This document shows, one piece after another, positions 13,794 through 27,875 of a stretch of DNA of 64,000 nt; the stretch's first letter is position 1, and every line of letters starts with the position of its first letter. The DNA is from Bugula neritina (taxonomy: Eukaryota; Animalia; Bryozoa). Location: contig OZ037768.1 in assembly GCA_964035545.1 (NCBI GenBank), positions 19,885,700 to 19,949,699 of the forward strand, in the 5' to 3' direction. Made by a program: the position numbers and the translations under genes. The notes below the pieces were generated by a model that saw only the letters and a list, made by a program, of their open reading frames with translations, was not told the DNA's origin and made no database searches.

Positions 13794-15710
13794 TCATTGC
13801 TTTTCATGTCTCTGCTCAGCTTCTTCTATCATAGCCAGACTCTACGCAAGCATATGCAATTTCTGAATTCTAGTCATGACTCTCGATAATTTGCGTACAG
13901 AAAATGTGGCAAAAGCAATATAATATATCGCAGCATTTAATATTACTTGGAAACAGGCTGAGAAGTGAAAAGTGATAGTCTGTTAGCAAGTTAGTAAAAT
14001 TTATACCCATCGAATATATTTATGGAGCAATAGTGGAGAAATTGAGATAGCCTAAGTTCTTTAATTGTTATAATAAATTTTGGTTAGGGGCGTGTGTTGA
14101 AATTTTTGCTAGAACATAACTTCTTATGCTACATTTCCAATCTAGAACACAGGCTTTCTCAATTTCCCCATTACTGCACCTACCTTAATGAATCATTAAA
14201 TATAAAACTCCACCACAAATAAAATGGAGCAATTAAATATACCCTGTGACCTAATGACATGGAAACATTATAATTGGTGTAATTGATGGAACCTGTAACC
14301 TACCCACAGATAGAAAGTAGCAGCACCAGTGCTAGCATCTCTCACTTCTGTTAAACTCATCGGACTTAGCAACTGTTTAGCTTCATCAGCAACTTCCATC
14401 GTCAAATTCCGGATTTTAAATTCCATCACGCGCCTTTTTAGCGATTCCTTTCCAGTTTTACCAATTAAGGCTACTATCGATCTCCAATCCTGTAGTAGCA
14501 AGTTTAGAGTGGGATGATGTATGATACATCCATGACACAACACAATGTTAGGTGAACCAAGTTTGTACTATAAAATGTTGTTTTTTTTATTGTCTCAAAC
14601 GAAATTAAGCACCAAATCATAATATTATTATAGTATCAACAACTATACTTTTAGTATTTTATAACAATAAAAAATTAAATCATTTTTCATGACAGGTAAT
14701 TTATAAAACACATACTTCACTCATAATTTGCTTATAAAAAATTGTTTCCAGTTTTATTTTATTTGACGATTATATGCCCTGAATATTGTTCAGCTATATT
14801 TTCAGAGCAACAATGCTTCATAAGCTGGTTTATTTAAAATGTAGTTGAATACAGAAAATAATGATAGTGACCATTTAAATAATTATATTGAGTAATTTGT
14901 GGCTACTACAAAATACGATGATTTAAAAGTGGGAGCAGCACCAAAATTGTTTTTTTAGTTTTTAAGGTACAGCAACCATATATAGTTAGCAAATTAATTT
15001 AGCATCAGATACTCATTAGACTTAGCTGTGCTGTATCTGTAAGCGTAAACCCTATTAATATTATCAACATATGCATTGCTTAACATCTATGTTCTTAGCT
15101 TTCCGGCTCAACCCCTTTAGCTAAGGTTATTAACAGTTTTTATAGATAAACTAGAATAACAAGTTGTATATAAATGTTTCAGTCTATTCAGTTGAGACAC
15201 TGCTGGTTTACTGAACACCCAATGCATCTGTTTACTTACTTATTACTTACTTGCCCATTCACTTTTTACCTATTTGCTTGTTTAGCTTTTTGTTTGTTTA
15301 CTTTCTATGCATTTGTCTGTTTGCTTATTTCTAATTTGTTTACTTGTTACTATGCTAAAAGTTGAATTATTCAATATGTCAGCAGCTGATTACGTCAGAA
15401 GCTTCTGTTGAAACACCAGATTTGCCTTTAAAATGTAAAACCAAATTTTTGAACATAACGAACCACATCATGTTGTGATTAGAGTTTAGTTAATGCACAG
15501 AAGTAAATGCAGAAAAGTAAATACAAGATGCAAAGCAAAGTTATTAGACATTACCTTCATGTCGCCTTTAGTGTTACCAAGCAGTAGCAGTGTTCCCTTC
15601 ATAACAATCTTGATGGGCTCAGGAGGGGAGCTGAAAGATTTGATCTCCGCAACAGTTCTTTGGTCCAACTTGAACACGGCATTTCGGAGCTCATCCATGT
15701 TTCTTAATTT
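13794..15710 (-). other. C-terminal dynein-MTBD-like domain of the Hillarin/KY-like protein (last three exons)
   Basis: [32 protein letters not shown]...[10 protein letters not shown]...[14 protein letters not shown]...[26 protein letters not shown] follows the MTBD pattern E(I/V)(K/R)S...PP..V..v......LLG...DW......AS.A......W. Confidence 0.7.
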
Positions 15711-18700
15711 CTAAGATTATTCCAAGTTTGAAAAATGACACAACTCCAACTTAAAACAGTGCTTTGACATGACAGCTTTAACTAAATTAATGTGCATTTG
15801 TTGTCACATGACTGCAGGTGCCCTAATATACCGTATGCTGACAAATCATGTTTATTGACAACATAGTTAAGACTTCACACCCCACATTGTGATACACACT
15901 TGGGTTTATCTGTTTACTGTAAGTAGTTACCTCTAGTCTTTTCTTTGCTGCAGCTATTTCCTTGTCCAGTTTTCCTCTGTGTTTTATAGAATTGGCTTCG
16001 ATTAGAGTTTCTTCCAATTCTTCAATGTCTTCAGATTGTGTTACAGCAACCAATCCTGTATTGTGTGAGATCAGACAATTTATACTGTATTATTAGCATA
16101 TTATATGTAAAGATGAAAAAATATAAATTTATGCAGAAAATACTGCAGAAATGCATCTACTCAATATATATATTTAAAGACAAATTTTGAAACCGCTGCT
16201 GCACATAGATTGAGTTATATAAATATATATATATATATATATATATATATATATATATATATATATATATATATATGTATATATATATATATATATATAT
16301 ATATATATATATATATATATATCTGTAATTTCTTTAATGTATTTAAATAAGGTAGAAAGCAATACAACATTTAATCTCAGCATAAAGGTCTGTCCACAGT
16401 GGGAAAGCACAGCTGTTCTGGATGTTCCACACAATCAGAAATCTCTGGATAAACTGAAATACTTTAGGGGAATAGTTTTATTTTACAAAACTTCCTGTCA
16501 ATGTATTTTAATTTTCAATAAACACTTTTTTTTACAGGTATCAGTTGCTGACGTCAGCGACCTTATCACAATGTTTCTGCCAACACAAAATTTCTCTTTT
16601 TAAAATAATCAGTTTCAATAGCTGTGTTTTTGTATGGAAAAATCTCAACAGCCACAATATGGTTTAAAAATGTGGTAAATCAATTATACACTGGAACCAC
16701 TTGTATGAGGCAGGGCTTGAATTCCACCCCCACATGCCATATACTGTGACATTGTGAAAAATTAAGTACACTTACTATCTGTAAAATAATGGTAGGTTAC
16801 ACAACATATATTCTGAGAAAAGAATGTTAAAAGTTTTGTTCAGTTGGCAAAGAAATATTGAGACTTCAGATAATGTTACAACATAAAAGAAACTATGTTT
16901 TAATTCGCCTCCATTAAAAATGACTTACTGTGGGTCTGAAGTAATTCTAAAAATTGATAAATTTATATTTCTGTCGAGATTTTAGAAATGATGATAATAA
17001 TATTATTTAGTTAAATGTGAATAACATAAAGTCGTGCTCTCTAATATAGCTTGTATTCAAAGTGATTTGATTAGTATTGTTGCACAATATAGGAGTACTA
17101 AATTGAGTGTAATACCCTCTGACCTACAACTGAGAGACTTAATAATCTATCACTATGAAATCTACACACAGAGACGTTCATGCACTTTAGGGCACTTTCA
17201 AATTTCATAGACTTAGGGAATCTGACAGGTTTTTACTTCTAATTAACTAACAGCAACTATTTTTGTAGCATATCAACTTGAGTTTGTCTAAATATAGCTG
17301 TAATTATTAGCTGGGAATATTCTTACTTCTCCTCATTCTGATTATTTGCAGTTCCCGTTCTGCTCTTGGCAATATCTTCTTTGGATCTGAGATGTCCCCA
17401 GCAGCTTTGAACTCTTCTATAGCACTTGCCAAGCTTTCTTCATCGCCTGATGCAATGGCATTCAGTAGCTTTTGCTTTAGCTCTCTAATTCTCACATCTA
17501 CAGCATACAAAGGTTTTGTGTTTGTAAAATAATTGCCCCCACCGAGATTCGAACCACAGACCTCTGGTTTGCAAGAAGCCATGGTAGTCAATTACACCAC
17601 AGGGGCGGCTGTGTAAACTCAACTCCACGGTGTTATCCATATGTGCTAGTGCGTGTGAATATTCTGCTAGAGTTTCTACTACAAGCAGTATCCACGCGCA
17701 TGTACAGCTAACCTACCCTCCTCTGAATCCGCCTCAGTAGTTTCCTCCTCTGATTCTACTTCCTCTTCTTTCTTTTCCACTTTCGTTTCCTTTTTATTAA
17801 ACACGCCTCCTATATAAAGGGCATCAAAAAGAATTGTTAACTGACGATGATTTTACTAAACATAATTTTTAATTTGATGTCTTTACTAGCAGATAATTAG
17901 TAAAATATGTTATTTTCTCAAGTATACTAATGTGTGAAGTATTAGTAATATTTTAATTAGACAACTCTTAAAAAGGTACGGCATACTTGCTGCTTGTTTT
18001 GGTACACTCAAAGATTGATACCAAAGATATATAGAGTTTTCCCAAATCTCACTAGGGGAAATATTTTAGTAGTTTAAGCATTCATAATAAAATTACTTTT
18101 TTCAATTAATAGTTTAGTTCTATGACACAGTAAATTAAGGGTCTATAATTGAGCATATTTCTATATAAGGTAAAAAAATTATTTTTAACAGAAGCTGACT
18201 TCAACTTAATTGACCTAAAATCATTTTATAAATAGCTCCACAGTGGGGATGATTGAGTGCAATAGTTTGTGATTTTCGAGTTTAGAGTTGGGGGCTCCAA
18301 GTTCGAATTTAAACCTCCACTCCAAAACCCGAGAATCTCAAACTACTGCACTCAGTTACTCCCAACTCAAAGCTGCTTATAGAGCCATTCTAAGGTTTGA
18401 ATCAAGCGTCTGTTTTGTTTTATTTCATAAATAAGTTTGATAAGAAAGTAGATGAAATTGGGTGTCATCCAAAAGGAGGTAGTGATGAGGTCATTATTGC
18501 AGGGTTAGCGGAGGCACAGGTTTATGAATGATGATAATTCAAAAGCCTCTTGTTTACATGGTGACTAAATCTTAGACTATAACTATGACTTCAGCGTTGT
18601 ATGTTTCAAGGCTATAGAATATTTTACTATTAGAATGCTACCTTTGTGTATAACCTTATATCTTTTCTTGAGGATTACGGTAGACTCCTGGCTGCTTCTT

Positions 18701-27700: not shown

Positions 27701-27875
27701 CTATGCATGCATTATAGAACTGCTAACCAACAACTAATTAACAACTAAGCAAAAACTAGAAAAATAGGAAGTTAGCTTCGGTTCTACAAACCTGGAGCAA
27801 TCTGTTCAACTCTTCATTTTGATAAATCTGCTCTTCTGCATTCTCATTTTGAGAGACGCTGGCTCCACAGCCCAT
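13794..27875 (-). CDS. Hillarin/kyphoscoliosis-peptidase (KY)-like transglutaminase-domain protein, 1001 aa, with N-terminal acylation motif and C-terminal dynein-MTBD-like domain (19 coding exons)
   Basis: Exons 27875-27792, 27551-27402, 25118-25007, 24382-24259, 23908-23670, 23005-22863, 22143-22000, 21509-21075, 20750-20625, 20311-20174, 19928-19758, 19476-19291, 18816-18642, 17809-17717, 17497-17327, 16055-15931, 15710-15555, 14489-14304, 13841-13794; total 3006 nt, open frame. Family motifs: [54 protein letters not shown]...WQLL, and repeated [16 protein letters not shown] and [18 protein letters not shown] beta-modules. Confidence 0.9.
16223..16322. repeat. (TA)n microsatellite, intronic
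   Basis: About 100 bp of TA with one interruption. Confidence 0.95.
17520..17606 (-). mobile_element. tRNA-like SINE head or tRNA pseudogene (family B) in a short intron
   Basis: GCCCCTGTGGTGTAATTG (A-box) ... CTTGCAAA ... GGTTCGAATCT (B-box) ... GGTGGGGGCA. The acceptor stem pairs but the anticodon and T stems are broken. Related copy at 43911. Confidence 0.6.
18187..18414. mobile_element. Degenerate foldback / MITE-like inverted repeat
   Basis: Left arm (aacagaagctgac...ttgagtgcaatagtttgtgattttcgagtttagagttgg) is the diverged reverse complement of the right arm (ccactccaaaacccgagaatctcaaactactgcactcag...caagcgtctgtt). Confidence 0.65.
21775..21891 (+). mobile_element. Highly decayed SINE remnant, probably family A-related
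   Basis: tggcctagcatgg...gggtttgaatccc...cattgatggtgtcaaaaagagcacc resembles the family-A head and body. Confidence 0.4.
23381..23556 (-). mobile_element. Decayed family-A SINE copy
   Basis: atccctgtgagaacccctgata...tgggctaaggg...ccagatgcgctc...gatcttaacacta is colinear with 7711-7923. Confidence 0.5.
26826..26921 (-). mobile_element. Internally deleted family-A SINE copy
   Basis: Keeps both ends (aaaaactcacgcaagtttatagtc... and ...cacggctgctccc) but lacks the middle. Confidence 0.75.

Follow-up and report, generated by a model that had tools for sequence, protein, structure and literature searches.

Dynein's microtubule-binding domain (MTBD) is normally seen as inseparable from its motor, its affinity set by sliding of the stalk. 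What, then, is such a domain doing at the end of a protein that has no motor? The question is raised by a predicted gene on the minus strand of a 64,000-nucleotide stretch of the Bugula neritina genome (contig OZ037768.1, positions 19,885,700 to 19,949,699; hereafter the window). Judged by sequence profiles and predicted fold, the C-terminal domain of its product is a true homologue of the dynein MTBD, in both sequence and structure. It lies behind a transglutaminase-like core, an array of immunoglobulin-like (Ig-like) domains and a helical bundle, in the following layout (window coordinates; amino acids, aa):

27875 (ATG) to 13794 (TGA), minus strand: whole gene, 19 exons, predicted, with splicing inferred from sequence.
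27792..27875, minus strand: exon 1, aa 1-28; MGCGAS start with an N-myristoylation consensus (G2, S6) and Cys3.
27402..27551, minus strand: exon 2, aa 29-78; disordered N-terminal arm, weak profile match.
22863..25118, minus strand: exons 3-6, aa 79-284; KY/Hillarin-type transglutaminase-like core, by profile and pairwise alignment.
18642..22143, minus strand: exons 7-13, aa 285-743; four KY-type Ig-like beta-sandwich domains, by PF23265, profile and homologue model.
17717..17809, minus strand: exon 14, aa 744-774; acidic linker, probably disordered, by sequence and homologue model.
15931..17497, minus strand: exons 15-16, aa 775-873; helical bundle of two helix-pair repeats, running into the CC1-equivalent helix.
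15710-15555, 14489-14304 and 13841-13794, minus strand: exons 17-19, aa 874-1002; dynein-MTBD-homologous domain, helices H1-H6 plus a short CC2.

Exon 17 alone matches dynein MTBD chains in the PDB (best E 8e-4); exon 18 alone has no dynein match there and reaches dynein only through a family profile. When we searched the PDB with a profile of 38 C-terminal domains, dynein heavy chains made up all 60 of the 60 matches listed, with the alignment covering the whole of H1-H6 and DNAH6 the best match (E 1e-11). The structures were predicted for a homologue from Lingula, P0005 (1025 aa), standing in for the window protein. The AlphaFold model of its residues 796-1025, at a predicted local distance difference test (pLDDT) score of 94, finds dynein MTBDs as its top structural matches, with Z 17.6 against the mouse dynein MTBD and Z 14.8 against an axonemal gamma MTBD (root mean square deviation [rmsd] 2.4 over 123 residues). 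These results bear out the MTBD-like C-terminus proposed by a first-pass annotation of this DNA. The domain shares with the MTBDs of DNAH6, yeast Dyn1 and mouse DYNC1H1 (PF12777, about positions 98-210) the H1-H6 fold, an E-x-K/R motif in H1, a PP turn, both conserved Trp residues and short helices equivalent to CC1 and CC2. Unlike dynein, the window family has a GKTGK insertion after H3, and the Arg/Lys of H6 is mostly Asp. The helices on either side match the ends of the coiled-coil helices CC1 and CC2. Because CC2 stops at the C-terminus, at the stop codon, there is no stalk and no motor; the gene model and its homologues alike lack an AAA+ motor ring and a long coiled-coil stalk. PF12777 is matched weakly by 23 of the 38 domains, and in the proteins scanned the domain scores below the Pfam gathering cut-off. 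Most instances miss that threshold, and for this reason databases list family members as "uncharacterized" or "kyphoscoliosis peptidase"; one entry (P0165) already has an automatic PF12777 match. The helical bundle usually accompanies the MTBD-like domain, the two forming one module. An "MTBD-like" motif in TTLL11 was considered as a relative and set aside, the element being unrelated.

Is the chain continuous, or has the model joined pieces of different genes? Exons 15-19, or exon 1, could derive from another transcript, which would place anchor and MTBD on separate chains, and the genome does hold a short paralogue (C4:20.43 Mb) and an adjoining stand-alone gene that might invite such an error. 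We consider it very improbable. Every intron has GT-AG borders, and frame and phases are continuous over the 19 exons. The single open frame of the first-pass annotation thus stands; its length is 1002 aa in the predicted join, not 1001, a mismatch that probably reflects one splice-site choice. When every exon was scored on its own with a 51-homologue profile, exons 3-13 and 15-18 all gave matches, with E-values from 5e-4 to 4e-47, that together tile profile positions 88-1006 contiguously and colinearly. Exons 1, 2, 14 and 19, which are short or of low complexity, are individually non-significant against this profile, and for exons 1 and 2 this leaves the error scenario some room. Exon 2 has a Pro-rich motif that is also placed ahead of the core in homologues; extra exons once drawn between 27473 and 25118 were dropped after exon 2 was extended to a GTGAGT donor past 27402. 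A tblastn search with P0005 gives gap-free, colinear matches at this locus from the core to the C-terminus, with about 45-53% identity across the two main MTBD exons. Finally, relatives have the entire protein as a single open reading frame on single, intron-free, transcript-like contigs of 3.3-4.1 kb.

The core belongs with a poorly understood family, and here too the first-pass annotation holds up, in its naming of the core, the loss of catalysis and the modules that follow. Exon 5 aligns pairwise with leech Hillarin (Hirudo medicinalis Q964C7, P0107; E 2e-11) and frog KY (P0111; E 3e-10), full-length homologues match PF01841, and exons 3-6 match the homologue profile. Read against the frog KY motifs, the catalytic Cys position is Gln145 and the His position Ala188, with Asp203 kept; the family consensus has the same changes. 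Since both Cys and His of the triad are lost, the core is, on its sequence, a pseudo-enzyme. The beta-rich modules seen earlier are four KY-type Ig-like domains: exon 8 matches Pfam Ig-like_KY (PF23265) above its cut-off (E 6e-21), and the AlphaFold model of P0005 has four Ig-like domains followed by the helical bundle, which corresponds to the helical repeats first described. The counterpart of the acidic linker (P0005 765-787) has a pLDDT below 50. Hillarin and Ltd-1 proper have an N-terminal LIM domain. A LIM domain had been noted as missing here, and we found no LIM-like motif in the open segments of 25119-34000 or in the full-length homologues scanned. Hillarin and KY share the transglutaminase-like core and the KY-type Ig domains behind it; unlike the window protein, they have neither an MTBD-like domain nor an MGxxxS start, and frog KY keeps Cys-His-Asp and Hillarin the His. 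The best solved relative of the core and Ig region is FAP246 (7n6g_6E; E 8e-10), from the C1b projection of the Chlamydomonas central pair. No other solved structure that we found combines a KY-type core with two Ig domains (Z 19.6 over 385 aligned residues); FAP246 keeps the His, and the match stops before the C-terminal module. FAP246 is listed with leucine-rich repeat and EF-hand domains (PMC11244166). In fungal Cyk3, a catalytically dead transglutaminase-like domain is a binding module that binds Rho1, and Hillarin acts with septins (PMC3718969). Cyk3, which has an SH3 domain and proline-rich regions, is likened to the window protein by description, not by sequence.

At the other end of the protein, the MGCGAS start fits the myristoylation consensus (Gly2, with a small residue at position 6). 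The lipid-anchor motif proposed earlier survives in part: of 58 homologues that have both domains, 44 keep an MGxxxS start, MGSGAS being commonest, but the palmitoylation-type Cys3 occurs in only 3 of the 58, so that dual acylation is no family trait. The protein is probably lipid-anchored through its N-terminus.

We favor, with slightly better than even confidence, a spacer that has no catalytic activity, is anchored in a membrane and holds on to microtubules with its last domain, in a grip that ATP does not control. The linker role put forward by the first-pass annotation is plausible on this view. Gly2, once myristoylated, would fix the N-terminus to a membrane; the transglutaminase-like and Ig domains would serve as spacer and protein-binding platform, in the manner of the inactive domain of Cyk3; and the C-terminal domain would dock through H1 and H3 where dynein binds the microtubule lattice. 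Because there is no AAA+ ring to slide a stalk, binding would be ATP-independent and fixed, probably of modest affinity. The likeliest site would be motile cilia or the cortex of ciliated cells, location being the least supported step. If so, the KY/Hillarin family gains a concrete microtubule hypothesis, and the protein would offer a natural stalk-locked MTBD, a tool for finding which contacts suffice for binding.

The contact residues bear on whether the domain can still grip tubulin. Yeast dynein has six residues that form salt bridges with tubulin (bioRxiv 10.1101/774414), which we mapped through the profile alignment onto 50 non-redundant members. The E3122 equivalent in H1 is Glu in all 50, the R3124 equivalent, also in H1, is K/R in 97-100%, and the R3152 equivalent is K/R in 61-75%; at the R3159 equivalent Gly predominates, and the residue after it is K/R in 82-92%. 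In the H1 Glu the charge is flipped, and its partners are alpha-tubulin R402 and R403 (PMC4298687); the invariance of this Glu favors retained binding for that reason. The window protein has E895, K897 and R928 in place and K936 one residue past the R3159 site; in all, three of the six contacts are kept in place, and at each remaining site a basic residue sits one position off. This pattern is suggestive of retained tubulin binding, not decisive.

A wide structure search with the P0005 C-terminal model also matched non-dynein chains, at Z 7.5-10.7, values that helical bundles may reach by chance. They include a chain of the Toxoplasma intraconoidal microtubules (9ya2_L, Z 10.4), a bovine sperm chain (9fqr_Xl, Z 10.7, rmsd 2.9) and a Chlamydomonas radial-spoke head chain (7jrj_I, Z 7.5); a Trypanosoma brucei axonemal chain (9e5c_2e) has an MTBD-like fold as well. 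All four are likewise motor-less, with host architectures that differ from that of the window protein, and the texts consulted, figures aside, make no mention of a likeness to dynein. From lengths and numbering, we take 9ya2_L to be probably ICMAP2, 9fqr_Xl probably EFCAB5 and 7jrj_I probably RSP2. The globular domain of ICMAP2 decorates the microtubule every 8 nm (PMC12819142). EFCAB5 is described as a stalk protein of radial spoke 3 with protein partners (PMC11779644); radial-spoke proteins apparently carry the fold with no microtubule contact on record. The MTBD fold thus seems to serve on the microtubule lattice in some proteins and away from it in others.

The radial-spoke chains are among several observations that weigh against a membrane-to-microtubule linker. 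The K3117 equivalent is mostly Gln, with K/R next to it in 66% of fused members. The equivalent of R3201 in H6 is acidic in 58-83% of members (Asp for the most part, otherwise Glu), with an Arg immediately before it in about 76-83%; in the window protein the site is D976, with the Arg again one position earlier. An acidic residue at this site argues for weaker or altered binding, and the invariant Glu of H1 could have a structural role. At the N-terminus, the loose myristoylation pattern also arises by chance, being present in three of five upstream ATG-Gly starts, and the full-length homologue model (predicted template modeling score 0.65) leaves the domain arrangement uncertain. Such points fit a serious if minority contender, in which an MTBD-derived fold was repurposed for protein-protein interaction and lost lattice binding, within a membrane-anchored KY/Hillarin/Cyk3-type scaffold with septin, actin or Rho partners. 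In its favor are the Asp of H6, the Gln at the K3117 site and the fold's presence in radial spokes, together with the septin link of Hillarin and the hold of the dead Cyk3 domain on Rho1 (PMC3718969); a family-specific SAGAATF helix, together with the GKTGK insertion, could make a new binding surface. However, few polar positions are better conserved from coral to mollusc to chordate than the two H1 contact residues, and the net charge of the domain core averages about +3, neither of which suits a fold that has left the lattice.

For the membrane-microtubule linker, by analogy, a ciliary role is hinted at by FAP246, by the cilia and microtubules where the other motor-less chains are located and by structures described in scallop cilia. 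We know of no molecular identification of the scallop bridge between membrane and doublet. Electron microscopy in 1980 recorded these bridges and ascribed them to a dynein-like ATPase (PMC2110547). It is tempting to go further and propose that a motor-less dynein foot split off before cnidarians and bilaterians separated and became a mobile, ATP-independent anchor, the myristoylated version of which bridges the ciliary membrane and outer doublets in invertebrate motile cilia. As a whole, this scenario is speculative, and we rate it as rather unlikely. The protein is a testable candidate for the membrane-microtubule links of ciliated marine animals. Improbable, in our estimate, is a membrane-recruited, tubulin-binding brake or competitor at the dynein/kinesin site, or a cortical device that catches the ends of microtubules in neurons or dividing cells, in place of a ciliary bridge. 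Versions of the module without a lipid anchor, stand-alone or with EF-hands, would suit regulation, and Hillarin and Ltd-1 are tied to cytokinesis and the axon hillock, but simple competition needs neither a long spacer nor a conserved anchor motif.

How widespread is the architecture? It is no one-off, as a single bryozoan gene might have suggested, but marks a widespread bilaterian subfamily with a mobile C-terminal module. The full arrangement is found in Lingula, bivalves, gastropods, annelids (Owenia, Helobdella and Paralvinella) and several Branchiostoma paralogues, and therefore spans protostomes and deuterostomes. In a sample biased by its seeds, 54 of 73 collected proteins with this core and at least 850 aa have the module; leech Hillarin and frog KY are without it. 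The helical bundle and MTBD-like domain also end EF-hand/coiled-coil proteins of molluscs, a nemertean and corals, and occur in short proteins of Ciona and a tubeworm. A motor-less MTBD homologue is thus conserved in coral, spiralian and chordate proteins of at least three host types. In an MTBD tree, built from single exons and of low power, dynein exons fall on one side of a supported branch and non-motor copies on the other. On the core tree, MTBD presence needs nine changes, five of them forced by supported branches, with some "absent" rows seemingly truncated; the tree fits a single origin with losses or repeated gain, and the two cannot be told apart. We found no account of a dynein-type MTBD in the KY/Hillarin family in the literature covered, with most subscription journals outside it; this agrees with the first-pass annotation, which knew of none. 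The architecture is real, ancient and, apparently, so far undescribed. In three Branchiostoma members (P0003, P0043 and P0046) the Ig array is followed by a CARD-like domain and then the MTBD-like module, and an intron-less 951-aa family member (P0140) lies on a 276-kb metagenome contig.

This genome, of 216 Mb, holds five non-motor copies of the MTBD-like type, the window gene included, along with an EFCAB5-like gene:

6967..11718 of the window, minus strand: stand-alone 136-aa MTBD-like gene, directly downstream and separate; exons 11718-11685, 10988-10972, 8823-8686, 8146-7970 and 7011-6967.
C8:6502000-6511999, plus strand: second transglutaminase-like + Ig + MTBD-like gene.
C4:1515000-1524999, minus strand: EF-hand + coiled coil + helical bundle + MTBD-like gene.
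C4:20.43 Mb, locus positions 7510-9120, plus strand: short helical + MTBD-like copy.
C4:7.167 Mb, locus positions 4559-6690, minus strand: EFCAB5-like gene, matching PDB 9fqr_Xl at E 3e-15.

In all five non-motor copies two shared break points split the domain, a sign that a single exon module was duplicated. The 136-aa protein keeps a dynein-like KK in H1 and K in H6, which the fused domain has lost, and is a good comparison for binding assays of the latter. The second gene of the full type, on C8, keeps a His at the catalytic His position of its core. In pieces, the EF-hand gene at C4:1.52 Mb is 50-66% identical to mollusc and nemertean "trichohyalin-like" proteins, a type also present in corals. 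One exon of the copy at C4:20.43 Mb is close to exon 16, and the copy sits after an apparent fatty-acid elongase gene. The EFCAB5-like gene has a C-terminal MTBD-like segment that was independently recovered by sequence profile, which suggests that radial-spoke proteins of the EFCAB5/RSP2 type carry an unremarked MTBD fold.

Dynein-like coding sequence broken only by TAA and TAG occurs on contigs C41 and C193, which are probably ciliate contamination of the assembly, with an alternative genetic code. Elsewhere in the window, exons at about 33786-35900 (plus strand) resemble, in our reading, a subunit of the proteasome activator PA28; at 54676-56040 (plus strand) lies a gene for an aldo-keto reductase (PF00248, E 2e-10).

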